A DNA stretch of 64,000 nucleotides, taken from sequence record MN445183.1; one strand, 5' to 3'. The notes below the pieces were generated by a model. It saw nothing but the letters and a program-made list of their open reading frames with translations, was not told where the DNA came from and did not search any database. A program made the translations under genes and the position numbers. This document shows positions 15,678 through 50,309 of this stretch, in pieces. Positions within the stretch are counted from its first letter, which is position 1. Every line of letters begins with the position of its first letter.

Positions 15678-16625
15678 ATGCTTGAGTTAATGTTAGCAGG
15701 AAACAATGTCACCATAGTACCTGGATCTGGGCCGGGTAATAAAAAGCTTTTAGCAGGTGACAAAACAGACGGTTGGTTTGGGATGATTGACTCCGGTGAA
15801 ATGCCGATACCGCAATTAATGCTGAACGAAGCCGGTGGCGGGATAGCGTCACTACCCCAGCAGGCAAGTGTACCATTGCGCTGGATGAAAGCGGTTATTA
15901 ACGGTAAATACATCTTTGTTGCCAATACACCGTTTAACACATACCCTTTACTGGACCTCTATAACCGCGGACAAGTCTTCGGTACCGATGATAACGGGAT
16001 TAGCCCGCCGTCCAACCGTTATAACGATCAGAACCAGTTACAGATCGTTACGCATATCGACAAAGCCGGTAAAGTGTGGGCGTTTAAATTAAGGCTGCTG
16101 AGTCACAGCTCTAACGACAAACCTACTTCTACGTCCGCATCAGCTGCGGAACTTGCCGGAGCCGAATCGTTTAAGTTATACTCGCACGTCATCAGCGGCA
16201 TGATTGCCGATGATGGTAAACGCTGGGATAACCTGGTTAACGGTGTTGATTACTACGCTGCGTGGTCAACAAGTCGAACAGTCTATGGAACACAGTTCTT
16301 GTGCCGTGTACAAAACAGCCCCCGTGCTGGCGGCAACTGGTGGGGCAACACCACGTCCTATAACTGGTTCCCGGTATTGGAGGTTATCGATCCTGATGTT
16401 GACATTATTCCTCCAGTCAACATTGCTTTTGAAACCATTAGTTTGTCCGGCACAGGCACTACAGCAACAAGTGATGCAATCACAATGATTCCTAGCGAAC
16501 TCAATACGCTACCACAAATCGAAGTCGCGCCACATGTCAAAGCGTCGGATGACAATGCGATCGCTATGACGCCGTCCGAGCTTGCGAAACTTGACCACGC
16601 AGAACGCCCGGCGTTCATGAAATAA
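15678..16625 (+). CDS. Putative virion structural protein, cassette 1 gene A (MLE-tag plus paralogous domain)
   Basis: MLELMLAG start; GPGNKKLLAG..GWFG..W.KAVINGK.IF..WFPVLEV domain shared with six other ORFs in the window. Confidence 0.7.
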   Translation: MLELMLAGNNVTIVPGSGPGNKKLLAGDKTDGWFGMIDSGEMPIPQLMLNEAGGGIASLPQQASVPLRWMKAVINGKYIFVANTPFNTYPLLDLYNRGQVFGTDDNGISPPSNRYNDQNQLQIVTHIDKAGKVWAFKLRLLSHSSNDKPTSTSASAAELAGAESFKLYSHVISGMIADDGKRWDNLVNGVDYYAAWSTSRTVYGTQFLCRVQNSPRAGGNWWGNTTSYNWFPVLEVIDPDVDIIPPVNIAFETISLSGTGTTATSDAITMIPSELNTLPQIEVAPHVKASDDNAIAMTPSELAKLDHAERPAFMK

Positions 16626-16635
16626 CAGGTGACAC

Positions 16636-17472
16636 ATGTACATACATTTGAAATGGGCCAATAAGAACACGCAGGATGTTTCTGTCAACATCTATCGTTC
16701 ATTGACCGCTATCGATCGAAACAATCCGGGTACACCGTTGGTCACACTAGCGGGTGATGTGGAAGAATACATTGACCGTGCAGTAACACAGGGCACAACG
16801 TATAACTACGTCATCCAGTTTGTCAAAGGAGCAAACAAAGTCACCTCGCGTAACTATACGTTCACGGCAAACTATCAACGTGGACCTGGGAACAATGTTC
16901 CAGTGTTGGGTAATGATGACTATGGTTTTATGTGGTACGGTCAGTTTGGAATGGCTAACGATATTCTGGCTAAATTGGGTATTTACCGTGAAACCAGTAA
17001 CCCTACTGATAACCCATCGATAATGGCCTACAAATGGAGCTTGAAAGGGGAGGTGTACTATTTGTTGTACATTGGCGGTAACTTGGTCAACACAGCCAAT
17101 GCGTTAGCATTTAGTAAAAGCACTGAACCGAAACCTGTTACGTTTGACGGGATCGACTACCTTGCTTCAATGCCGGATTACAAAGGCGATGGCTGGGTGC
17201 AGACCGACTACAGTACCAAACCACCAGTCGGTGATAGAAGTATGGCTACTCGGTTAACGTTACCGTATCTTTACTACATCAGTAATCGCGGTATACCGGG
17301 TGAGGAGCTGGGATGCATCGGTTCTGCCGCTCTGTCTAACGCTCACGTGAGTGTAACTGACCCAACGTCAGAGCGTTTTACATGCTGGCGTGCGGATATC
17401 GACAGTATCGTCCACTACACAACACTTAGCTCTAGTTACGTCTATCCCGTCATTCTTAAACTTGTGGAGTAA
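16636..17472 (+). CDS. Putative virion structural protein, cassette 1 gene B (FN3-like plus paralogous domain)
   Basis: LKWAN..NIYR..Y.D..V..GTTYNYVI FN3-like pattern; paralog of 19470..20306 (both 278 aa). Confidence 0.7.
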   Translation: MYIHLKWANKNTQDVSVNIYRSLTAIDRNNPGTPLVTLAGDVEEYIDRAVTQGTTYNYVIQFVKGANKVTSRNYTFTANYQRGPGNNVPVLGNDDYGFMWYGQFGMANDILAKLGIYRETSNPTDNPSIMAYKWSLKGEVYYLLYIGGNLVNTANALAFSKSTEPKPVTFDGIDYLASMPDYKGDGWVQTDYSTKPPVGDRSMATRLTLPYLYYISNRGIPGEELGCIGSAALSNAHVSVTDPTSERFTCWRADIDSIVHYTTLSSSYVYPVILKLVE

Positions 17473-17474
17473 TC

Positions 17475-18413
17475 ATGTCAATTACTTTAAACTGGAGTAA
17501 CCGCGGTCAGGCAGTTACCAGCGTGAAGATTTACCGTAATTTACATCGTAGCGAGACTCCGACGTTACTCACCACGTTGAACACCCCTGATGAGACATAC
17601 ACCGACACTACCGCAGAAATGAATAAACTTTATTTCTACAGAGTGGCGCTGGTCATCGGTGATGAAGAGGTTCCAGGGGCGGTGGTACCAATGATGTCTG
17701 TGAACGATACCGGCCCTGGACCTAAGGCGTTGGTCGCCGGCACCATGGAGTATGGGTATTTTGGCACGCTGACACCCGATGAGTTTTTGACAACCTCGGA
17801 TGTTCAGCGTGTCGGGACCCCTAACGGGTTCACCAGTTATTCGTCAGGCACTATCGCACTCTGGCGTAAATTTGCCAACATGGGGAGAATCATTTATATT
17901 CCCAACGCGCCGGTATGGCAGGTATCCACAGCCACTACGGGGATCAACGCACTACAGTTACTATACAGCAGTGGTTATCTGTATGGCGGTGGTGGTACGG
18001 ACAGAGCTCCAGGACTTACCGGATCCCGGGCGCAGGACAAGAAAGCAACGTTAGGTGCCTATGAATTCTACGTCAGGGTGCCAAATGCTGAGTATGACCG
18101 TGACCCAACAACGCAGTATACAACTGGCACGTCATTCAACACTTATGGTGGTGAGGTGTCCATGGTTGCATCGGCCAATAACTACGGACCGATTCAGTCT
18201 TATATTTCTGCCGGGGCTGGTTGGCCACGCATTGCACCACCAACTACGTTAACCGCCATTGGACACGGTTATCTCTTGACATCGACGATGGCTAATAACT
18301 TACAAGTCACCTTCTTTGCCAACCAGCAGCAGTCTGTTGGCACCAGTGTTGCCGGGACAACCGCCAACGTCATATTTGGCTTCTTGACCATTTTGGAATT
18401 GATTCTTGGTTAA
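17475..18413 (+). CDS. Putative virion structural protein, cassette 1 gene C (FN3-like plus paralogous domain)
   Basis: MSITLNWSN..KIYR..YTD..YFYRV; GPGPKALVAGTMEYGYFG; paralog of 20308..21267. Confidence 0.7.
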   Translation: MSITLNWSNRGQAVTSVKIYRNLHRSETPTLLTTLNTPDETYTDTTAEMNKLYFYRVALVIGDEEVPGAVVPMMSVNDTGPGPKALVAGTMEYGYFGTLTPDEFLTTSDVQRVGTPNGFTSYSSGTIALWRKFANMGRIIYIPNAPVWQVSTATTGINALQLLYSSGYLYGGGGTDRAPGLTGSRAQDKKATLGAYEFYVRVPNAEYDRDPTTQYTTGTSFNTYGGEVSMVASANNYGPIQSYISAGAGWPRIAPPTTLTAIGHGYLLTSTMANNLQVTFFANQQQSVGTSVAGTTANVIFGFLTILELILG

Positions 18414-18447
18414 TATAAGGCAGGGCTTCGGCCCTGCTTTTATACCG
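18414..18447 (+). terminator. Hairpin terminator between the duplicated cassettes
   Basis: GCAGGGC-TTCG-GCCCTGC followed by TTTTATACCG. Confidence 0.8.
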
Positions 18448-18487
18448 CTTGATGATATGTATCCACTGATTATAAAAGGTTCGCGCT

Positions 18488-19459
18488 ATGTTAGAGATAC
18501 TTATTTTTGGAGGTGGCGACGGCGATAATTATCTGCCAAACTCAGGACCTGGTAACAAACGACTGATAAAAGGATCAAAGGACGAAGGGTGGTTGGGGTT
18601 AGTTGATGTGCGGTTAATGCCTTCTATATTCCAGGCCGCTGATAGAATCGGATTAAACGTTACACCGTTCACCGGCAGTAACACGGCAGCACCGCGTTGG
18701 TTTAAAGCGATCATTGATGGGAAAGCAATCTTCTTTCCAAACGGTCCATGGGTTAACCCACTGAACTTCACTGACATCTATTACAAGGGCGGTGTGTACG
18801 GGATTGACGGGGTCGGACCTAACGGAACACCGCCGAGTAACGTGGGAAGTGGCGTAAACCAGCTGCAATATTTAGACTGGATTGATCCTGAAGGTCGAGC
18901 GTGGTTGTTTAAGATACGTTTAATCAAAGGCAACAATCCGGTTTACGTCACCAACCAAAGTTCGGTAACCACAACATCAGCCGCCGATGCTGAGTTTTGG
19001 CGATTGGTGGGTCGCGTGGTGGCTAACAGCACGATTGCGGCCAGTGACCGTTGGGATAACCTTGTACTCAATGTTGACTACAAGGATTCTCGCCTTCACG
19101 ACCAAACCATCACCTCCGGTTACTACCATGCCGTATCTGACTTCTTGAAACCCGCCACAGGGTCCTGGAGTCAGTCGGGCTTCAGCAACAGCTATGATTG
19201 GCGACCGGTACTTGAAGTGGTTGATCCTGCAACCACGTTTGTTCCCCCTATCGCACCTCGTGGTGTTACGCCTCGCGGAATAACCCTAAACCCATCCATA
19301 TCGGGCTCGGCGGGGTTCCTGGTTGCTGGCGATGTTTTATTAACAAATCAGAAAACAATACCGTTAGCGACACGCACGAGCAGTAATGCCTTTACCGTGG
19401 CTGGTAATGTATCTACTATAGTGATGCCGGTTGCGCCGATTAACCCAACGCTAAGCTGA
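18488..19459 (+). CDS. Putative virion structural protein, cassette 2 gene A
   Basis: MLEILIFGG start; paralog of 15678..16625 (GPGNKRL..GWLG..RWFKAIIDGK..RWDNLV..WRPVLEV). Confidence 0.7.
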   Translation: MLEILIFGGGDGDNYLPNSGPGNKRLIKGSKDEGWLGLVDVRLMPSIFQAADRIGLNVTPFTGSNTAAPRWFKAIIDGKAIFFPNGPWVNPLNFTDIYYKGGVYGIDGVGPNGTPPSNVGSGVNQLQYLDWIDPEGRAWLFKIRLIKGNNPVYVTNQSSVTTTSAADAEFWRLVGRVVANSTIAASDRWDNLVLNVDYKDSRLHDQTITSGYYHAVSDFLKPATGSWSQSGFSNSYDWRPVLEVVDPATTFVPPIAPRGVTPRGITLNPSISGSAGFLVAGDVLLTNQKTIPLATRTSSNAFTVAGNVSTIVMPVAPINPTLS

Positions 19460-19469
19460 GGTAAGTAAC

Positions 19470-20306
19470 GTGTACATCGATTTAAAATGGGCTAATGTTA
19501 ATACAGGCCCAATAACGACTAACATTTATCGCGGAACGTCGCCTTTGGATAAGACCAACCTTGGCACCCCGGTCGCCGTCTTAACCAATAAAGAAGTCAC
19601 CTGGCGAGACCTTAATGTCACCGCCGGCACAACGTACTATTACGTTATCGAGTTTGACGACGGTAATGGCAATAAAGTTTCAACACGGGTGTTTACCATT
19701 GTGGCGAACTACATCCGTGGGCACGGTAACGCGTCCGTTATGCTGGGTGACCAGAACTACGGGTTTATGGATTACGTTGCCCCTGGTCGACTGCTTGGCG
19801 TATTGACCTCAGCGGGGTTCTCACCCACGGGTATCTCGGATGTCAACTTTGGCCCTGCGGTAAAGTTCTCGTACAACAACAAGGTGTACTTTAGCATTTT
19901 GCAACAGGCCAACCAGGTTGGGTCAACGTTAAGCGTGATGACACCGTTGCTCAACAACGACGCCGGTATACCGGTTACCATTGATGGATTTAACTACATC
20001 CTGCGGATGGCAAAGGTATTGGGGCCCAGCTGGGATGGCACATCTAAACCTGCCAGCCAAGCAGATTTGGATGAATATTACATCAAGTTCATTTTACCAC
20101 AGTTTAACTATTTGCCAAATTGGGAAGGTGAATCGCTGGGTAAGGTTAATAACCTGTCAGCAACCAACACCGTGTTCGGACGGGAAGTGGTGTCCAACAC
20201 CATTGCAAGCCGGGTTGGTCGTAATGGCGCCATTGTCTGGAACGCCTCGACTCTGGCATTAACGGCTTCCCAGTACATCCCTTTCATTTTAGAATTGGTG
20301 GAATGA
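19470..20306 (+). CDS. Putative virion structural protein, cassette 2 gene B
   Basis: GTG start after GAGGT SD; MYIDLKWAN FN3-like; paralog of 16636..17472. Confidence 0.7.
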   Translation: MYIDLKWANVNTGPITTNIYRGTSPLDKTNLGTPVAVLTNKEVTWRDLNVTAGTTYYYVIEFDDGNGNKVSTRVFTIVANYIRGHGNASVMLGDQNYGFMDYVAPGRLLGVLTSAGFSPTGISDVNFGPAVKFSYNNKVYFSILQQANQVGSTLSVMTPLLNNDAGIPVTIDGFNYILRMAKVLGPSWDGTSKPASQADLDEYYIKFILPQFNYLPNWEGESLGKVNNLSATNTVFGREVVSNTIASRVGRNGAIVWNASTLALTASQYIPFILELVE

Positions 20307-20307
20307 C

Positions 20308-21267
20308 ATGTCAATTACATTGAATTGGACAAATAAAAACCCCAACACCACGAACTTTAAAGTGTATCGTGGGACTTCGAAAACTGCGTTGTCTTTATTA
20401 ACCACGCTTGCCAGTTCCGCCACGACGTATACGGATAACGCCGCCGTAAACAACACGCTGTACTACTACCAGGTTAACGTGGTATTGGGTGGATTGGATG
20501 AAATCCCTGGCGCTATTGTCCCGCACGCCGCAGTCACCGATACAGGACCCGGACCAACAACTCTCATTGCCGGCAGCATGGAGTGGGGGTTCTTCGGCAC
20601 GATTCCCGTCGCTGAGTTTATCAGTGATTCGGCATACAAGGCGTTGTCTGCGGTCGGTAACGCATACTCGACGGCGATCACTAGCTGGTACAAGTTTGCT
20701 TACAAAGGCAAGATACTGTTTGTGGCCAGCGACCCGGCCAGAACCCAAACCGTTGCACCGTATATGTTTGCCAAAGCGATATATAACGAAGGCGCGTACC
20801 TTGGTACAGGAGATAGTTCGTTACCGCACACGTTGGTGGGTGCGTCGGCTGTACCACAAACGAAACGGGCGACGTTTGGCTCGTACGAGTTCATTGTGCG
20901 TGCAATGAAAGCCAACGAAACCACACCAGCTAATGCGAACGGTATCACCAACAGCTATAACCCGCCAGTCTCACGCGAACCCATTTTCTCTGAAGCAAAC
21001 CTGATTGCTTCCGGGAGCAGTAACTGGGCCGTTGTGGCGCCATACCTGGCGGCTGGACTGATGCCACCTAAGTTGATTGGGTCTGGTGGATTGATCGGCC
21101 CGTATCAGAACAGCTACTTCATCACTCAACACTTCAACAACGCATCGTCGTATTACGCGTTAATGATGGTTAATAACAATACGTCCACTACGAGTGTTTC
21201 CACGTATGCTTATCAGACATCCATAGCGTGCGTGTTCCTACCGATACTGGAATTAGTTACCCCGTAA
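20308..21267 (+). CDS. Putative virion structural protein, cassette 2 gene C
   Basis: MSITLNWTN FN3-like; GPGPTTLIAGSMEWGFFG; paralog of 17475..18413. Confidence 0.7.
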   Translation: MSITLNWTNKNPNTTNFKVYRGTSKTALSLLTTLASSATTYTDNAAVNNTLYYYQVNVVLGGLDEIPGAIVPHAAVTDTGPGPTTLIAGSMEWGFFGTIPVAEFISDSAYKALSAVGNAYSTAITSWYKFAYKGKILFVASDPARTQTVAPYMFAKAIYNEGAYLGTGDSSLPHTLVGASAVPQTKRATFGSYEFIVRAMKANETTPANANGITNSYNPPVSREPIFSEANLIASGSSNWAVVAPYLAAGLMPPKLIGSGGLIGPYQNSYFITQHFNNASSYYALMMVNNNTSTTSVSTYAYQTSIACVFLPILELVTP

Positions 21268-29523: not shown

Positions 29524-31218
29524 ATGACAGAACCAACCTTTACCCCAGTTGATGAAGTATTAGAAATTGTGCGTGCCCCTGTAACCACCACCGAACCGTC
29601 AGGCACCAAAGCTGCTGAAGTAGAGCTGCGTCTGAACGGGCATCTGGTTGCCTGTATTTTTGAAGAAGGTGCAGCTAACTGGAGCGACACTAAGATCTTG
29701 GCACACACGTACCTGGAGTCATTGTTCTATCGTGGTGCTGCGGCCAGCGAGGCGTACAACGAAAGTATCTTCACGCTGGTTATGAACACGCTGGCGAAAG
29801 TCACTGACAAAACTGACTTTGTCACCGCTGACTGGCAGGATGTTAAACTGAATCGTGCTTTTGACAAACCCAACCAATCAATGTACCTGGAAATTAGCAC
29901 GCCGGATGGCTATGACTTGATCATCAAGTATATGTCACCAGGCATGCCATGGCAGGAAATCGTTGTGCCGTACAATGCCGAAGTTCCGTCCATTGACGAG
30001 CTGTGGGCAAAACTGAACGGCGACGGCGAAGGCGAATGGGATAACGCCGGCACGATCATTCACAAGGGGATGTTCTATTCGCTTGATGTGACGGCTAACC
30101 CGGTTATCACTGCGCGTGCTCGTTTGGTGATTCAGCGTGAAGGTGGTGATGTTATTTATCAAGATAACAACCTGACTCAGCACGGGATTATCGACGTGCT
30201 GCTGGAACTGTACCGCCGCTTAGCGCTGCAAATGAATTACGGCGACATTCAGACGTTGACCTACGATGATCGTCTGGCCCTACAGACCAATCTGATGAGT
30301 TTGCTGAACGAGCTCCTGGGCTTACACGAATACACCATGTTGGTAAATGGGTTATCTGCATCAGTGCGCGGTTCGGTGGTTCCTGACGTGCAATGCATGA
30401 TCACCCACACCATCATTGATGATCAGGGTCGTATTCGTGCAGACTTCAAATACTTCAACGGGATGGATAACTGGTCGGTTGAACGTAGTCTGTCGTTCAA
30501 CCTGGGCGAAGAACCACCAGAAGCCACCAATGTGTATTTGCAAGACACTGCACAGATTCGTCGTGGTTTGGGGTTGGATGTCAAAGACATGCTTGGCATC
30601 GATGACGTACCGTTTGAAAACCGTTACGATAATGAGCAACTTGAGTCGCCGCAAATGGCTGAAGCAGCATCTATCTCGGCTATCGTAGCAGTTGGTCCGA
30701 ATAACGGCATTGGCATGGGCAGTGATTTACTGTGGCGTATCAAAGAGGACATGAAGTTCTTTAAAGAAACCACAACGGGTCACGTAGTAGTCATGGGTCG
30801 TAAGACCTTTGAGTCCATCGGGCGTCCACTGCCTAATCGCCAGAACATCGTCGTTACACAGGACCCGGAGTATGTGCTGAACTTGTACACTGGTGAAGAT
30901 CAAACCGCATACACCAACCTGCATTGCGCGACCAGTATCGAAGAAGCGATTCTATTGGCACAACGTCTGAGCGCTGCACATTACGACAGCAATGAAATCT
31001 TTATCATCGGCGGCGGCGAGATCTATAAACAATGCATGCCATTCACAACCCGTGTTTACCTGACCCAGATCAACGGCGATGATTCACACGCGGATGTTTT
31101 CTTCCCTATTACCGGTGATGAAGTGGCAACGCATTGGATAGCCAGCGTGTTGAACGAAAACATGGTCTCGGAAGAAGGTGTGTCGTACGCTCGTTACCTG
31201 CTGTCTCGTAAGTACTAA
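29524..31218 (+). CDS. folA: Dihydrofolate reductase fused to a ~385-aa uncharacterised N-terminal region
   Basis: C-terminal AIVAVGPNNGIG..LLWRIKEDMKFFKETTTGHVVVMGRKTFESIGRPLPNRQNIV..FIIGGGEIY..D.FFP; GAGGA SD before ATG 29524. Confidence 0.9.
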   Translation: MTEPTFTPVDEVLEIVRAPVTTTEPSGTKAAEVELRLNGHLVACIFEEGAANWSDTKILAHTYLESLFYRGAAASEAYNESIFTLVMNTLAKVTDKTDFVTADWQDVKLNRAFDKPNQSMYLEISTPDGYDLIIKYMSPGMPWQEIVVPYNAEVPSIDELWAKLNGDGEGEWDNAGTIIHKGMFYSLDVTANPVITARARLVIQREGGDVIYQDNNLTQHGIIDVLLELYRRLALQMNYGDIQTLTYDDRLALQTNLMSLLNELLGLHEYTMLVNGLSASVRGSVVPDVQCMITHTIIDDQGRIRADFKYFNGMDNWSVERSLSFNLGEEPPEATNVYLQDTAQIRRGLGLDVKDMLGIDDVPFENRYDNEQLESPQMAEAASISAIVAVGPNNGIGMGSDLLWRIKEDMKFFKETTTGHVVVMGRKTFESIGRPLPNRQNIVVTQDPEYVLNLYTGEDQTAYTNLHCATSIEEAILLAQRLSAAHYDSNEIFIIGGGEIYKQCMPFTTRVYLTQINGDDSHADVFFPITGDEVATHWIASVLNENMVSEEGVSYARYLLSRKY

Positions 31219-43721: not shown

Positions 43722-45236
43722 ATGGAATCAACATCATTGCCGAGAGTATCCATGGTGTTGTACACCGATGGTGGCTTTCGACAGAATGTGGGCGGATGGG
43801 GTGTGCACGGGTACAGTTACCCCAAAGATGACAGCGACGACAAAAAGAAAAAGAAGAAACCCGCTGTAGGTGTTCCGACCACAACTGGGTACATCATCAA
43901 AGACGATCCGAAAATGAATCAACGCGAAGTTGTGCGTCCGACTCATGTTTTCGAATCGTTCGGTGGTCTATTGCCTGAAACGACAAACAACATCGCTGAA
44001 ATGACAGCCGCCATTAACGGTATGGATCTCGCCATTAACCACGGCGCTGATAACCTGGTGGTATTCACAGACAGCGAGTACGTAACAAAAGGGATCACCC
44101 AGTATCTAAATAAATGGAAAGCGAACGGATGGAAGAAATCCACAGGCGATGAGATTGCTAACAAATCGCTGTGGATGAGCATTGATAGCAAACTGGGTGA
44201 ACTCGCTACAAAGAACATCCACTACACGTTCCAGTGGGTGAAAGGCCATGATGGTCATCGTGGGAACGTAATGGCGGACCACATGGCGACCCGTGGCGTG
44301 CTGTTGGGTAAACAGGGCGATACCGAACCTCGTCATCTGGTTCAGGACTTTAGCGAATACGACAAGTACAAGGCAGATCGCCATCGTTTTGTCTCTCATT
44401 CGCGCTGGTATTTCAATCTCAGCGACGACTCTCTGCTGAAGGCGAACGAGCACGGGTATTATGAGTACAGCTTCGGACACCCTTCAAAAGAAGATACCGA
44501 CCAGGTCTATTTAGGCAAAGCACTTGCCGATACCGCATTCAGTGTCGTGTGGTTGAAGCAACCTGAAACCTGCTTGGACTTGGTCTACACTCGCGTTAAA
44601 CAGATTGCGACCAACGTTTTCGGTAATGCATTCATTGGGCGTCTTGACAACATCTACAGTCCGTTTATCCATAAGGAAATTATGGACTACGGCGGTGAGT
44701 TACTGGTCAGGGCGAACAAGAACGATAACGACATCACCAACTGCACCGGTGCGTTAATCGTTCGTGAATGTAATCCGCCGGCTATCTCGTATCGGGCTAT
44801 CAACAACCTGGTGTTCTTGAACACCTGCTTGACTGAGTTCCATACGGGTAAGCTGTCGGTACTGCGTAAGGTGTACGATGTTACTGACCTGATCTTTGAT
44901 TCGGAAACCAACAAGAAGGGTGAAGTGAAGATGTCCTTGAAAAAGGCCATCAAACAAAACACCAAAGCCATCAAGTTGCCGGTATCGTGTGAGGTCATTA
45001 ACAAACCGCTTACCGTTGACGTTACGTGTACGTTAGGGTTGGACATTCCTAGCCGCAATACTTTAAACGGTATTGTTGATGAAAATCCGAAAGTGCATAT
45101 CCTGGTGGTGAAGGAATCCGATGTGGCGTTCCGTTATTTAACCATCATGTCGTGCGATGCGGGATATTGCATCATGGCAAATGTCTACGCCAACCTACGT
45201 ATCTTGTCCAAAGCTGAGTTGGATAAGTGCGCGTAA
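43722..45236 (+). CDS. rnhA: Ribonuclease HI with long C-terminal extension (phiKZ-type)
   Basis: LYTDGG, TNNIAEMTA, VFTDSEYV, WVKGHDGHRGNVMADHMA catalytic motifs. Confidence 0.9.
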   Translation: MESTSLPRVSMVLYTDGGFRQNVGGWGVHGYSYPKDDSDDKKKKKKPAVGVPTTTGYIIKDDPKMNQREVVRPTHVFESFGGLLPETTNNIAEMTAAINGMDLAINHGADNLVVFTDSEYVTKGITQYLNKWKANGWKKSTGDEIANKSLWMSIDSKLGELATKNIHYTFQWVKGHDGHRGNVMADHMATRGVLLGKQGDTEPRHLVQDFSEYDKYKADRHRFVSHSRWYFNLSDDSLLKANEHGYYEYSFGHPSKEDTDQVYLGKALADTAFSVVWLKQPETCLDLVYTRVKQIATNVFGNAFIGRLDNIYSPFIHKEIMDYGGELLVRANKNDNDITNCTGALIVRECNPPAISYRAINNLVFLNTCLTEFHTGKLSVLRKVYDVTDLIFDSETNKKGEVKMSLKKAIKQNTKAIKLPVSCEVINKPLTVDVTCTLGLDIPSRNTLNGIVDENPKVHILVVKESDVAFRYLTIMSCDAGYCIMANVYANLRILSKAELDKCA

Positions 45237-46527: not shown

Positions 46528-47916
46528 ATGAGCTTATCTTTTGGTGATGTAATCGAGCAATCGAAGCCGATACGTCCGATGCTAAACATTGGCGCTGGCT
46601 TTGATATCCCGACCGGTAGCTACCGTTTGGGTAAGCATGGCGAGTCCATCCTCAATGGCGGGCTTGCGCCGTTTACAGCCATCGTAGGGAAAGGGAACAC
46701 CTTTAAGACAGCAATTGCCATGTTCATGATGGGGCGAGTGCTGGAACGTTATTCTAACTCTAACGGTCTGCATTACGACACCGAATGTACGTTCAGTCCT
46801 GACCGTATCCTGAGTTTGATGAGCCACCTGGAACCTGGTACGGCACAGGAGTGGATCGACAGTGGTCGTATCTACCTGACCGATGACTCCATCGCAAAAG
46901 GTAACCAGTGGTTTAAGCAGACGGTACAGAACTACGGTGAGATGAAGAAGAAAGACAAATCCACCATTGGTCATTTGCCGTTCGTTGATTCTAAAGGGAA
47001 TTACATCCCTTACCACTATCCAACCATCAACATCGCCGACTCCATGTCAGAGATGAAGTTTGATGATCTGGAAAAGAACTACGCGAAGATGGAAATCGGC
47101 CAGGGCGAAATGCAAACCGAAGCCATGCGTGTATCGAACGCCAAGCGTATGCTGATTGAAAAGACGCAGGGTTATGCTAACGGCGGCGGGTTGTATGTAT
47201 TGATGACCGCGCACCTCGGTAAAGACCTGAACATGGACGGTAAACCACAAGAGAAGAAAATGACCTTCATGAAGCAAGGTGATAAAATCTCTAAGGTACC
47301 GACTCAGATCATGTCTCTGCCGAACAACGCCTGGGAAATCTCTACCGGTACCGTGCTGATCGACCGCAACACCAAAGAGTGGATGTACCCGAAACCGGGT
47401 GACATCGAAACCGCAGGTAACCCCGATCTGTTGACGCTGATTGCGAAGAACCTGCGTGGTAAGAACGGGCCGTCTGGAGTGCCATGGGAATTCGTGATGT
47501 CTCAGTCTGAAGGTCTGTTGCCGTCACTGACTGAATTCAACCACATCAAATCCTGCAACCGTTATGGTCTGGGTGGTAACGATCGTAATTATTATGTTGA
47601 GCTGTGCCCGGATGTCAAACTTATGCGTACCACGGTGCGTGGTAAGATTGATGAGACTCCTGAGCTTCGTCGCGCTTTGGAGATCACCATGGAGATGTGT
47701 CAGATGCGTTATCTGTGGCACACCCGTGATCCGAAGTACAACATGACACCAGAAGAGCTGCGTATTGGGCTCGAAAAGAAAGGGTACAAGTGGGACGTCC
47801 TGCTTAACACCCGCGGCTTCTGGACGTTTGAGGAAGATAAACACCCTCTGCCGTTCTTAAGCACCATGGACTTACTCCGCATGTACCATGACGAGTATCG
47901 TCCGTATTGGATGTAA
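46528..47916 (+). CDS. uvsX: UvsX/RecA-like recombinase (phiKZ-type)
   Basis: GFDIPTG..GG..AIVGKGNTFKT P-loop, YDTE, IADSMS Walker B. Confidence 0.85.
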   Translation: MSLSFGDVIEQSKPIRPMLNIGAGFDIPTGSYRLGKHGESILNGGLAPFTAIVGKGNTFKTAIAMFMMGRVLERYSNSNGLHYDTECTFSPDRILSLMSHLEPGTAQEWIDSGRIYLTDDSIAKGNQWFKQTVQNYGEMKKKDKSTIGHLPFVDSKGNYIPYHYPTINIADSMSEMKFDDLEKNYAKMEIGQGEMQTEAMRVSNAKRMLIEKTQGYANGGGLYVLMTAHLGKDLNMDGKPQEKKMTFMKQGDKISKVPTQIMSLPNNAWEISTGTVLIDRNTKEWMYPKPGDIETAGNPDLLTLIAKNLRGKNGPSGVPWEFVMSQSEGLLPSLTEFNHIKSCNRYGLGGNDRNYYVELCPDVKLMRTTVRGKIDETPELRRALEITMEMCQMRYLWHTRDPKYNMTPEELRIGLEKKGYKWDVLLNTRGFWTFEEDKHPLPFLSTMDLLRMYHDEYRPYWM

Positions 47917-48006: not shown

Positions 48007-48423
48007 ATGTTAAATAAAGAAGTACGTATAGTCGTTGCCGGCGTTAAGGGATTCCACGATAAGGAACGTTTAAAGCTGGCACTTGATTCACTCATCTGCG
48101 ATATCTTCCTCGTCAACGAAGGCGTAGTTGAGGAAGACGAGCTGTTGACGAAAGAGCATGTCGTGCTGATCACCAACGGTGAAATGAAAACGCTGGCAGC
48201 TGAAGTCAAAGAGTACGGCGCTGAAGCCGGGATCGATGTTCAAGAGATTGGCGTCGAATGGGACCGTGGTAAGAAAGCGTTCTTTGATAACTGTGGTATT
48301 TTGGGGATGCGTTCTACCCACGCGCTTATTTTCACCAACCACAACGATGAAGGAATGTCGACCTTAACGAAGAGCTGCCTGGAAAACGGGAGCCGCGTAC
48401 GAGTGTTCGCTACCGCCATCTAA
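48007..48423 (+). CDS. Degenerate YspA/SLOG-like protein (start revised to ATG 48007)
   Basis: RIVVAG.KGF.D..LITNG..EW..ALIF pattern parallels the SLOG domain at 49915..50309. Confidence 0.65.
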   Translation: MLNKEVRIVVAGVKGFHDKERLKLALDSLICDIFLVNEGVVEEDELLTKEHVVLITNGEMKTLAAEVKEYGAEAGIDVQEIGVEWDRGKKAFFDNCGILGMRSTHALIFTNHNDEGMSTLTKSCLENGSRVRVFATAI

Positions 48424-48432
48424 GGACACATC

Positions 48433-49305
48433 ATGATCGTATCGGAATCACACATCGGCATTCTGGATGTACCAGTCAGTCATGTCATTTGCACCGTCAA
48501 TACTGAAGGGCATATGGGACGTGGCATTGCGCTGTATCTTCGGAAGTGTGTTCCAGGACTCTACGACGCATACCGTGAACAGTGCAAACAAAAACAATTA
48601 CTGGTCGACACGTTATGGGTTTACGAGAACAACGAACCAAAGATTCTTTGCTTTCCAACGAAAGACAAAACTTGGGAAGACAGCAGGGTTGAGTGGATTG
48701 ATGCCAACCTGCGCAAGCTTCGCGATACCTACAAGGAATTGGGTATCACGAGCGTTGCAATGCCACCGCTTGGCTGTGGCAACGGTAACCTTAAATGGGA
48801 GGACGTTCGTCCTCTCGTTTATGCCATTTTGGGTGATTGCGACCTTCAGGTGCATATCTGTTTAGGGAAGCGTTTACCGGTTGCCGCAGAAGACGGCGAC
48901 AAACACATTAACATCTGGACCAAAGGTAAGACCTCTGTTGGGCGTAAACTAAGCAACTTATCACCACACGGTTTTCTACACGAAGACCATGGTTGGTTTG
49001 AATGCTTGGAAGGTTACTGGTATTGGCTGGCCACCGGCTGTAAACATGAACAGTTTAAAAGCATGAACGGCTGGGAAGCGAAGTCGATAGGGTCAAAGAT
49101 GGATCGAGTGGAGATGCCTGATTTCCAAGTGCGATTCAAAGAAGGGATGCGACTACGCCTAGAACAAAACCAGGCACTGCGTCAAGAGTTGATCACTTCA
49201 ACATTACCGTTTGAACACTATTACGTTTACGGTGATCACGACACGGGTAAGGTGGTTGATGTCAAAGCACGGCATCAGTGGCAGCTCGACTTCTACGATG
49301 AATAA
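48433..49305 (+). CDS. DarG-like macrodomain fused to a NADAR-like domain (truncated at the duplication junction)
   Basis: CTVNTEGHMGRGIAL..FPTK..AMPPLGCGNGNL.W macro motifs; LSNL..F..LEGYW..AK..G..QNQ.LR.EL NADAR-like; TAA created at the repeat junction. Confidence 0.85.
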   Translation: MIVSESHIGILDVPVSHVICTVNTEGHMGRGIALYLRKCVPGLYDAYREQCKQKQLLVDTLWVYENNEPKILCFPTKDKTWEDSRVEWIDANLRKLRDTYKELGITSVAMPPLGCGNGNLKWEDVRPLVYAILGDCDLQVHICLGKRLPVAAEDGDKHINIWTKGKTSVGRKLSNLSPHGFLHEDHGWFECLEGYWYWLATGCKHEQFKSMNGWEAKSIGSKMDRVEMPDFQVRFKEGMRLRLEQNQALRQELITSTLPFEHYYVYGDHDTGKVVDVKARHQWQLDFYDE

Positions 49306-49894
49306 AGCTTCGCGATACCTACAAGGAATTGGGTATCACGAGCGTTGCAATTCCACCGCTTGGCTGTGGCAACGGTAACCTTAAATGGGAGGACGTTCGT
49401 CCTCTCGTTTATGCCATTTTGGGTGATTGCGACGTTCATGCGCATATCTGTTTAGGGAAGCGTCTACCGGTTGCCGCAGAAGACGGAGACAAACACATTA
49501 ACCTCCGGACCAAAGGCAAGACCTCTGTTGGGCGTACACTAAGCAACTTATCACCACACGGTTTTCTACACGAAGACCATGGTTGGTTTGAATGCTTGGA
49601 AGGTTACTGGTATTGGCTGGCCACCGGCTGTAAACATGAACAGTTTAAAAGCATGAACGGCTGGGAAGCGAAGTCGATAGGGTCAAAGATGGATCGAGTG
49701 GAGATGCCTGATTTCCAAGTGCGATTCAAAGAAGGGATGCGACTACGCCTAGAACAAAACCAGGCACTGCGTCAAGAGTTGATCACTTCAACATTACCGT
49801 TTGAACACTATTACGTTTACGGTGATCACGACACGGGTAAGGTGGTTGATGTCAAAGCACGGCATCAGTGGCAGCTCGACTTCTACGATGAATA
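48715..49894 (+). repeat. 590-bp direct tandem duplication (48715-49304 and 49305-49894)
   Basis: By-eye comparison: 10 substitutions, all in the first ~235 bp; the rest identical; each copy starts with AAGCTT. Confidence 0.95.
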
Positions 49895-50309
49895 CCGCAA
49901 GGCGGCACAAATGGACCATAAAGTCATGAACGTATTAATTGCAGGTGGCCGGACGTTCAATAACTATCTGGCATTTAAGCAAGTAGTCAAAGAACAACTC
50001 GAGCATTTTGAAACGCCGTTCGACGGGGATTATGATATCAACCTCATTACCGGGATGGCGCACAGCGGTCCTGATAACATGGCCATCCAATATGCCCGTG
50101 AATTTGGTTGTCAGTTAACCGGTTGGCCTGCGCTGTGGGACAAGTATCAGAAACGCGCCGGGATGATTCGCAATCATCACATGTCAAAGCAAGACTTGCA
50201 TTATGCGATCATCTTCTGGGACGGGGAAAGCCACGGTACCAAAAACATGATCGAACTCCTGGCCAAGAATAATATAGCCCATTTTATCTATATTTATCCC
50301 AAGGAGTAA
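49329..50309 (+). CDS. Macro C-fragment, NADAR-like domain and YspA/SLOG domain (second half of the duplicated gene)
   Basis: TTG start with no strong SD; VLIAGGRTF..ITG.A..G.D..W....AGMIRN..FWDGES.GT..MI SLOG motif. Confidence 0.7.
   Translation: MGITSVAIPPLGCGNGNLKWEDVRPLVYAILGDCDVHAHICLGKRLPVAAEDGDKHINLRTKGKTSVGRTLSNLSPHGFLHEDHGWFECLEGYWYWLATGCKHEQFKSMNGWEAKSIGSKMDRVEMPDFQVRFKEGMRLRLEQNQALRQELITSTLPFEHYYVYGDHDTGKVVDVKARHQWQLDFYDEYRKAAQMDHKVMNVLIAGGRTFNNYLAFKQVVKEQLEHFETPFDGDYDINLITGMAHSGPDNMAIQYAREFGCQLTGWPALWDKYQKRAGMIRNHHMSKQDLHYAIIFWDGESHGTKNMIELLAKNNIAHFIYIYPKE

Follow-up and report, generated by a model that had tools for sequence, protein, structure and literature searches.

A candidate DNA de-ADP-ribosylation cassette with macrodomain, NADAR, and SLOG modules in a Salmonella jumbo phage, and the tandem duplication that splits its central gene in the deposited sequence

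Introduction

What might a jumbo phage do with a locus that brings together a macrodomain, a NADAR domain, and two SLOG modules, and why is the gene that carries three of these modules broken in the deposited sequence? The question is raised by positions 48007–50309 of a stretch of MN445183.1, the 288-kb genome of the Salmonella jumbo phage vB_SalM_SA002 (SA002), which is of sewage origin. Coordinates refer to the window, the whole 64,000-nucleotide (nt) stretch that was analyzed, in which base 47900 is base 109900 of the record. The locus begins with the ATG of a gene for a 138-amino acid (aa) protein and is filled by three annotated plus-strand genes of 138, 290, and 326 aa; the second and third are the open reading frames (ORFs) referred to here as ORF1, which carries the annotation “putative phosphatase, fusion protein,” and ORF2, the last base of whose stop codon closes the locus. 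An earlier note on this DNA had proposed that the locus encodes an eraser of the ADP-ribose marks made by both classes of DarTG system.

When intact, the cassette consists of a small divergent SLOG protein and a 428-aa protein in which a macrodomain of the DarG type is followed by a NADAR domain of the His type and then by a YAcAr SLOG domain. We propose that it serves in counter-defense and that dual reversal of DarT-type DNA ADP-ribosylation is its most likely mechanism, with a probability, judged by analogy, of about 0.6. On phage DNA, the thymidine-linked ADP-ribose produced by DarT2 would be taken off by the macrodomain and the guanosine-linked ADP-ribose produced by DarT1 by the NADAR domain, and the SLOG domain would act as a targeting or ligand-binding accessory.

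Results

The macrodomain belongs with DarG

ORF1 and ORF2 were searched separately, with the natural intact homologues P0001 and L002 used in place of the complete protein. In single-sequence searches of the PDB, the macrodomain of ORF1 matches the DarG macrodomains of T. aquaticus (5m31, E = 5e-23) and M. tuberculosis (5m3i, E = 1.6e-21), with a far weaker match to human TARG1 (E = 1e-6). The separation persists with a family profile, which gives 2.9e-41 and 5.2e-40 for the DarG structures, 2.7e-13 for TARG1, and 0.02 or more for other macrodomains. With 42.1 bits, the match to the Pfam Macro model clears the cut-off of 22, and the DarG model of PADLOC is matched at E = 3.1e-41. The NCBIfam model antitoxin_DarG is also matched (E = 1.7e-38), but with a score of 132.7 against a cut-off of 250 and at model positions 8–145 of 338; because this sub-cut-off alignment covers the macro part only, the DarT-binding half of DarG is absent. 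The PTK motif containing Lys77 (codon 48661–48663) lines up with its counterpart in 5m31 and 5m3i; in DarG and TARG1, this lysine is the catalytic residue.

A further comparison is offered by gp104 of phage PhiKZ, a DarG2-like macrodomain of the chimalliviruses named AdfM, whose sequence we took from the paper that describes it (PMC13309987). The identity is 28% over 130 aa, the PTK lysine is aligned, and the catalytic Asn23 (codon 48499–48501) aligns with Asn23 of gp104, the residue whose mutation (N23A) weakens AdfM (PMC13309987).

NADAR fold of the middle domain

The middle domain was identified by combining a family profile with a structure model and profile-profile alignment by hhalign; a single-sequence search of the PDB with this domain returned no NADAR. 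An exhaustive search recovered a family of 1339 clusters (50% identity) at E ≤0.001, the members of which are mostly stand-alone proteins of 150–180 aa. An alignment of 62 members contains an invariant Glu, Pro, and His, with the Glu and the His present in 62/62 sequences. When the family profile is compared with the PDB, two NADAR structures rank first, at E values of only 0.032 and 0.18. The Pfam models scarcely recognize the family: PF08719 weakly matches 1 of the 62 members (E = 0.011) and PF08010 weakly matches 4 (best E = 0.051), whereas T4 gp30.3 itself scores 237.5 bits with PF08010.

The AlphaFold2 (AF2) model of NADAR copy 2 has a predicted local distance difference test (pLDDT) score of 97.1 and a predicted template modeling score (pTM) of 0.90. 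Its leading Foldseek matches in the PDB are all NADARs, namely YbiA (2b3w; E = 3.4e-4, template modeling (TM) score 0.63), the Phytophthora nicotianae NADAR (8bau; TM 0.60), and the NADAR of Geobacter lovleyi DarG1 (8bat; TM 0.54), and the next match falls to a TM score of 0.19. Among the viral models of BFVD, many matches named as NADAR have TM scores of 0.57–0.71. Alignment of the family with T4 gp30.3 (AdfN) by hhalign (probability 85%, E = 6.4e-6) pairs the LSNF and LEG motifs and places Glu193, Lys204, and His262 at T4 Glu36, Lys43, and His123, respectively; Lys204, in the sequence GCK, meets T4 Lys43 after a four-residue insertion. The three residues are encoded at 49009, 49042, and 49216 in copy 1 and at 49599, 49632, and 49806 in copy 2. 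Glu193 is the catalytic Glu of the S/L-E-G/H helix, and His262 occupies the position of the Glu or Asp in the last strand. Replacement of this Glu or Asp by His is a mark of phage NADARs (PMC11543638, PMC11825919). The model-based comparisons confirm the assignment of the middle domain to the NADAR fold and to the His-type subtype represented by T4 gp30.3/AdfN. The earlier note had recognized the domain as NADAR-like from its LSN..F..LEG pattern and had named a middle domain of some other fold as an outcome that would count against its proposal; the AF2 model and Foldseek return the NADAR fold.

The NADAR-SLOG unit also occurs elsewhere, alone (P0011), with DUF4326, with Macro and DUF4326, and with other unknown C-terminal domains. 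A group of jumbo-phage proteins on contigs of 263–278 kb (P0016–P0026), 317–326 aa long with one of 468 aa, carry the same His-type NADAR domain followed by a C-terminal region of ~170 aa; the three that were scanned (P0016, P0020, and P0022) gave no Pfam match.

A fused SLOG domain and a free divergent paralogue

The C-terminal domain of ORF2 is a marginal member of PF10686, the YAcAr/YspA (cpYpsA-related) SLOG family, with 28.9 bits against a cut-off of 28.2 when isolated and 26.1 bits when scanned as part of ORF2. Its homologues score 32–45 bits with the same model and also weakly match a DprA model; a homologue search with the isolated domain gave one match. The AF2 model (pLDDT 93.5) is a five-stranded Rossmannoid.

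For the 138-aa protein upstream, the match to PF10686 is below threshold (E = 1.8e-4, 21.7 bits), and several orthologues have precomputed PF10686 matches. BLASTP of the protein against the SLOG domain is not significant (E = 0.13), and hhalign of the 138-aa family against the fused SLOG gives a probability of 95.9% and E = 5.4e-9. The family is small, close-knit, and restricted to these phages, and in the SA002 protein the motifs GSR, SGxAxGxD, and AGxxRN are replaced by GVKG, TNGEMKT, and KAFFDN. A weak match of its profile to a HAD phosphatase in the PDB (E = 0.01) was judged spurious. The DarG-type macrodomain, the YspA-type SLOG domain, and the degenerate SLOG gene upstream had all been named in the earlier note, and the profile and structure comparisons above bear these assignments out.

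The cassette is conserved between a UvsX-like gene and an RNA polymerase gene

The flanks named in that note, uvsX and a vRNAP beta gene, are likewise supported by PHROG matches (Table 1). An intact protein of 428 aa, 97% identical (P0001), is found on two metagenome contigs with identical neighbors, and the corresponding site of Erwinia phage pEa_SNUABM_48 holds an intact ORF of 429 aa. In another Erwinia phage, RAY, and its Agricanvirus relatives, the SLOG-like protein (gp151, 139 aa), the macrodomain (gp152), and the NADAR-SLOG protein (gp153) are encoded by separate genes; the RAY cassette is ~54% identical and lies between UvsX-like gp150 and gp154, annotated “vRNAP beta subunit 2.” From these sequence comparisons, the cassette is conserved in a phiKZ-like jumbo phage clade that includes SA002, pEa_SNUABM_37 and pEa_SNUABM_48, and the Agricanvirus phages RAY and Ea35-70. 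The core-genome paper on RAY makes no mention of these phages or of macrodomains. The cassette had been described as inserted between core genes; its presence at the same site in RAY and relatives means that it is not private to SA002.

A 590-nt tandem duplication splits the gene in SA002

Offset comparison of the locus with itself reveals a head-to-tail duplication in register, in which two 590-nt copies differ by 10 substitutions and no indels; the window has no other direct repeat as long as 60 nt. Tandem Repeats Finder is blind to it because the period exceeds the 500-nt limit of the program. The junction lacks microhomology. Each repeat unit opens with AAGCTT, a HindIII site (48715–48720 and 49305–49310).

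Because 590 mod 3 is 2, the duplication shifts the reading frame, and the TAA that ends ORF1 straddles the junction, with two bases contributed by the end of copy 1 and one by the start of copy 2. The gene that is intact in the nearest relatives (428 or 429 aa) is thus split into ORF1 and ORF2. The earlier note had predicted that removal of one repeat copy would restore an ORF of 1287 nt (428 aa) from 48433, and the codon count agrees (290 + 138 codons, stop included in the 1287 nt), as does the length of the intact orthologues. Its picture of a single three-domain polypeptide does not hold for the deposited gene, which is broken and has its domains divided over two ORFs. This split ORF2 is recorded in one GenBank assembly only, and a literature search for papers on SA002 found none with sequencing details.

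The two fragments differ in how readily they would be translated. ORF1 has a good Shine-Dalgarno sequence (AAGGA, 6 nt 5′ of the ATG), and its NADAR copy is short by ~8 residues at the C-terminal helix. The frame of ORF2 is open only from 49302 and offers a single candidate start, a TTG. An AAGGA lies 1 nt 5′ of this TTG, whereas the spacing in all neighboring genes is 5–7 bases, which makes initiation of ORF2 doubtful. Judged from these signals, the NADAR-SLOG remainder probably yields little protein or none, and the well-initiated SA002 product would be a Macro-NADAR protein with a shortened last helix.

The substitutions lie on the second copy

The 10 differences between the copies are all confined to the initial 233 nt of the repeat unit. 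Copy 1 has the state of the nearest relative, used as outgroup, at 9/10 of these sites, which places the changes on copy 2. Seven are non-synonymous and three synonymous, unlike the differences between SA002 and its relative, which fall chiefly at third codon positions, and the pattern looks like relaxed constraint. The remaining ~221 synonymous sites of both copies contain no change at all (P about 8e-5 under simple divergence), so that the copies fit clock-like divergence poorly. Mutagenesis by a diversity-generating retroelement was ruled out, as the copy-2 changes are not adenine-specific.

It may be asked whether the duplication is adaptive, creating either two working genes (Macro-NADAR and NADAR-SLOG), divided much like those of RAY-type phages, or a switch that recombination could turn on and off. 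Stand-alone NADAR-SLOG proteins do occur naturally (phrog_11222, P0011, and RAY gp153); the 24 nt between the ORF1 stop and the ORF2 start make reinitiation conceivable; and recombination within the 357 identical bases would regenerate an intact gene with the ancestral 5′ part of copy 1. We nevertheless regard an adaptive duplication as very improbable, given the TTG start of ORF2 with its poorly placed AAGGA, the 44-aa macrodomain fragment that ORF2 retains, and a ratio of non-synonymous to synonymous changes that is a neutral pattern and includes Trp to Arg at a conserved aromatic position. The arrangement is also seen in no other phage compared.

A homing endonuclease site coincides with the substitutions

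A close relative carries this gene as an ORF of 683 aa (contigs L009:2164-4215 and L010:1131-3182) with an I-TevI/Seg-like GIY-YIG homing endonuclease in frame within the linker between the macrodomain and the NADAR domain. The endonuclease matches phrog_314 (E = 7e-22) and is 27–28% identical to annotated homing endonucleases; Rfam finds no group I intron around the L009 copy. A short D-G-x-x-H-x-N motif is present on both sides of the insert. The endonuclease stands in place of gene positions 435–476, which correspond to window positions 48867–48908 in copy 1 and 49457–49498 in copy 2. Nine of the 10 copy-2 substitutions lie within 40 nt of this interval (binomial 5.6e-6, a post hoc figure), and the cluster of substitutions spans both of its sides. 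Import of the substitutions from the endonuclease-bearing relative was ruled out, as P0036 carries the copy-1 residues there.

Erwinia phage AH06 has an extra gene of 115 aa (L011:1959-2306), with no PHROG match, between its macrodomain and NADAR-SLOG genes, and a further gene of 94 aa (phrog_625) 3′ of the NADAR-SLOG gene. With the endonuclease of L009/L010 and the extra AH06 gene at the same junction, the linker looks like a hot spot. A break made by such an endonuclease, followed by faulty repair, is a plausible candidate for the origin of the SA002 duplication.

We consider it probable that the duplication exists in the phage, because the copies differ at sites common to no relative. That the repeat instead arose through misassembly or from a mixed phage stock, and that the true SA002 gene is the intact 428-aa fusion, seems somewhat unlikely. 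The artefact would account for the restriction of the split ORF2 to a single assembly, when the genes of relatives are intact or cleanly separate, and for the lack of a usable ribosome-binding site before ORF2; a tandem repeat of 98% identity should moreover recombine away quickly in a phage that encodes a recombinase, and the concentration of all changes in 233 nt is not clock-like. Assembly errors, however, normally yield identical copies, whereas copy 2 has 10 substitutions, nine of them polarized as derived, that are absent from relatives. In addition, the two copies join cleanly in register, the substitutions surround the site at which a relative has its homing endonuclease, suggestive of a true repair event, and the window holds no second large repeat.

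Table 1. Features of the SA002 locus and its flanks (window coordinates)
Feature	Position	Strand	Basis or remark
UvsX-like recombinase, upstream flank, 462 aa	46528..47916	+	phrog_97, E = 1.2e-51; RAY orthologue gp150 annotated UvsX-like
Divergent SLOG (YAcAr) paralogue, 138 aa	48007..48423	+	Pfam PF10686 below cut-off, hhalign
ORF1, 290 aa, macrodomain and NADAR copy 1	48433..49305	+	Ends at stop made by the junction
DarG-type (AdfM-like) macrodomain, aa 10–143	48460..48861	+	PDB 5m31, PADLOC, NCBIfam, PhiKZ gp104
NADAR-fold domain copy 1, ancestral sequence	48871..49302	+	phrog_11222, phrog_652; same sequence family as modeled copy 2
Tandem repeat unit copy 1, 590 nt	48715..49304		Offset comparison
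Tandem repeat unit copy 2, 590 nt	49305..49894		Offset comparison; bears the 10 substitutions
Junction TAA stop	49303..49305	+	Undisturbed codon TAC (Tyr) at 49893–49895
Copy-2 substitution cluster, n = 10	49352..49537	+	
ORF2, 326 aa, TTG start: macrodomain remnant (aa 1–44), NADAR copy 2, SLOG	49329..50309	+	
NADAR-fold domain copy 2	49461..49919	+	AF2, Foldseek, BFVD, hhalign
YAcAr/YspA-type SLOG domain	49914..50306	+	Pfam core 49926–50147, PF10686
RNA polymerase beta subunit piece, downstream flank, 222 aa	50315..50983	+	phrog_3233, E = 1.1e-86

Other genes in the window

Six consecutive genes at 15678–21267 are annotated “putative virion structural protein”; with lengths of 948/837/939 and 972/837/960 nt, they look like a duplicated triplet of paralogues. 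The annotated ribonuclease HI at 43722–45236 has 504 aa, far beyond a plain RNase H, with a lysine-rich insert in its N-terminal part and a long C-terminal extension. The “putative dihydrofolate reductase” at 29524–31218, at 565 aa, is much above the length of that enzyme and may be a fusion.

Discussion

The proposal that the cassette reverses DNA ADP-ribosylation of both kinds draws on the identity of the domains and the conservation of their residues, by analogy with AdfM and AdfN. PhiKZ gp104 AdfM erases the marks that DarT2 leaves and gives chimalliviruses protection (PMC13309987). T4 gp30.3 AdfN removes DarT1 marks; Glu36 and Lys43 are needed for full rescue, and the E36A variant is inactive in vitro (PMC11825919). 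AdfN and two other phage NADARs act on guanosine adducts, and none of them acts on DarT2 products (PMC11825919). It is reasonable to regard these experiments, which are later than the earlier note and were made on separate domains of other phages, as strengthening by analogy the functional proposal made there.

The chief alternative is that the cassette degrades or sequesters soluble signals or toxins derived from ADP-ribose, such as the cyclic ADP-ribose isomers of Thoeris-type systems or ADP-ribose-1″-phosphate (ADPr-1″P), with the macrodomain and the NADAR domain cleaving different bonds of the signal and the SLOG domain binding it. This is the published prediction for phage combinations of Macro, NADAR, SLOG, and DUF4326 (PMC9503650, sections 3.4.3, 3.4.4, and 3.7.4; PMC7824862), and the SLOG domains of ThsA bind cyclic ADP-ribose isomers (PMC11204291). 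Related NADAR-SLOG units are fused to DUF4326, which is predicted to be phosphatase-like, and the presence of two SLOG modules per locus suggests that ligand binding matters. On the other hand, the macrodomain falls into the DarG clade by a wide margin, and bacterial DarG2 macrodomains are said to act exclusively on ADP-ribosylated DNA (PMC13309987); the NADAR domain is of the AdfN subtype, and all phage NADARs tested reverse guanosine ADP-ribosylation of DNA (PMC11825919); and the best Foldseek matches of the SLOG model show no specific likeness to a ThsA-type SLOG. A purely soluble target thus appears unlikely to us, and the two readings are not mutually exclusive.

Several observations weigh against dual reversal of DNA ADP-ribosylation by this protein. 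The gene is disrupted in the SA002 record, and NADAR copy 2 has the Trp-to-Arg exchange at the conserved aromatic of its N-terminal strand. Neither the Pfam NADAR model (PF08719) nor Phage_30_3 (PF08010) matches the middle domain at E values up to 10, and only about one-third of the 62 aligned family members have Lys or Arg at the column equivalent to T4 Lys43 or an adjacent one. The PDB matches of the SLOG model in Foldseek are generic (the CARF domain of Cam1, eIF2B, USP, and others), all with E >0.001. Finally, it has been argued that sets of Macro, NADAR, and SLOG domains in phages act mainly on soluble signals derived from ADP-ribose (PMC9503650).

The SLOG modules bear on a requirement described for T4 AdfN, which needs a further phage factor (PMC11825919). 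The fused SLOG domain is related both to ligand-sensing modules and to the Rossmannoid module of DprA that binds single-stranded DNA. Given that a His-type NADAR is here fused to a SLOG domain, SLOG could be such a partner. T4 gp30.2, the neighbor of AdfN, was considered as a hidden SLOG protein and rejected (no Pfam match; hhalign probability 0.4%). A joint reading would have both SLOG modules, the fused one and the degenerate free one, act as the “potentiating factor” type of partner for His-type phage NADARs, binding single-stranded DNA or an ADP-ribose-derived ligand and directing or switching on a de-ADP-ribosylase of two specificities, and would have cleavage at the linker by the endonuclease and faulty repair produce the SA002 duplication. 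Taken as a whole, this combination is quite unlikely; were it true, traffic of selfish elements would be remodeling a counter-defense gene.

The locus can be placed among known systems as follows. Like AdfM, its macrodomain is of the DarG type within the TARG1/ALC1-like clade and is encoded by phiKZ-like jumbo phages, and the RAY orthologue stands alone; AdfM, however, is a single-domain protein, whereas the macrodomain of the SA002 lineage is fused to NADAR and SLOG. The NADAR domain shares with AdfN the fold, the LSNF and LEG motifs, and the aligned Glu, Lys, and phage-type His, but it belongs to a separate and much larger family with the four-residue insertion after the Glu helix, and it is fused to other domains where AdfN stands alone. 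The two catalytic types are those of the bacterial antitoxins of DarTG2 (macrodomain) and DarTG1 (NADAR). In contrast to those systems, no DarT gene is nearby at the SA002 locus, the domain with which the C-terminus of DarG2 binds DarT is missing, the NADAR domain lacks the N-terminal extension of DarG1, and both types of eraser would be joined in one protein. The cassette of RAY (gp151–gp153) is syntenic, from the UvsX-like gene to vRNAP beta, and differs in having separate genes for the macrodomain and NADAR-SLOG, which the SA002/pEa_SNUABM lineage joins in one.

This domain set, combined by the same logic of fusion, appears in the catalogue of phage and giant-virus domain combinations by Iyer, Burroughs, Anantharaman, and Aravind (2021, 2022; PMC7824862, PMC9503650), which states explicitly that the YAcAr SLOG of jumbo phages occurs in fusions with Macro and NADAR. 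The novelty implied by the earlier note was therefore overstated, as phage fusions of Macro, NADAR, SLOG, and DUF4326 are already in these papers. They are computational surveys that favor soluble ADP-ribose derivatives, and the SA002 locus, its degenerate SLOG paralogue, and its disruption are not described in them. The architecture has thus been described computationally, and each of the two eraser activities has been demonstrated for a separate phage protein, in one case from this very group of phages. What appears to be new is a large family of His-type NADARs missed by the Pfam NADAR model, the conservation of a degenerate SLOG paralogue at the locus, the alternation of the cassette between fused and split forms, and the disruption of the SA002 gene together with its position at an endonuclease site. 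For those who would take the gene from SA002, the split in the deposited sequence makes verification advisable first.

The family of His-type NADARs, with more than 1300 clusters, could allow many phage “hypothetical proteins” to be annotated, and the SLOG modules, fused and free, give a way into the question of why AdfN needs a phage factor. RAY is a nucleus-forming phage (PMC10299810). If the fusion does reverse both thymidine- and guanosine-linked marks, a single protein would defeat both classes of DarTG, whatever the sequence of the toxin, and the account of AdfM in nucleus-forming phages would extend to DarT1.

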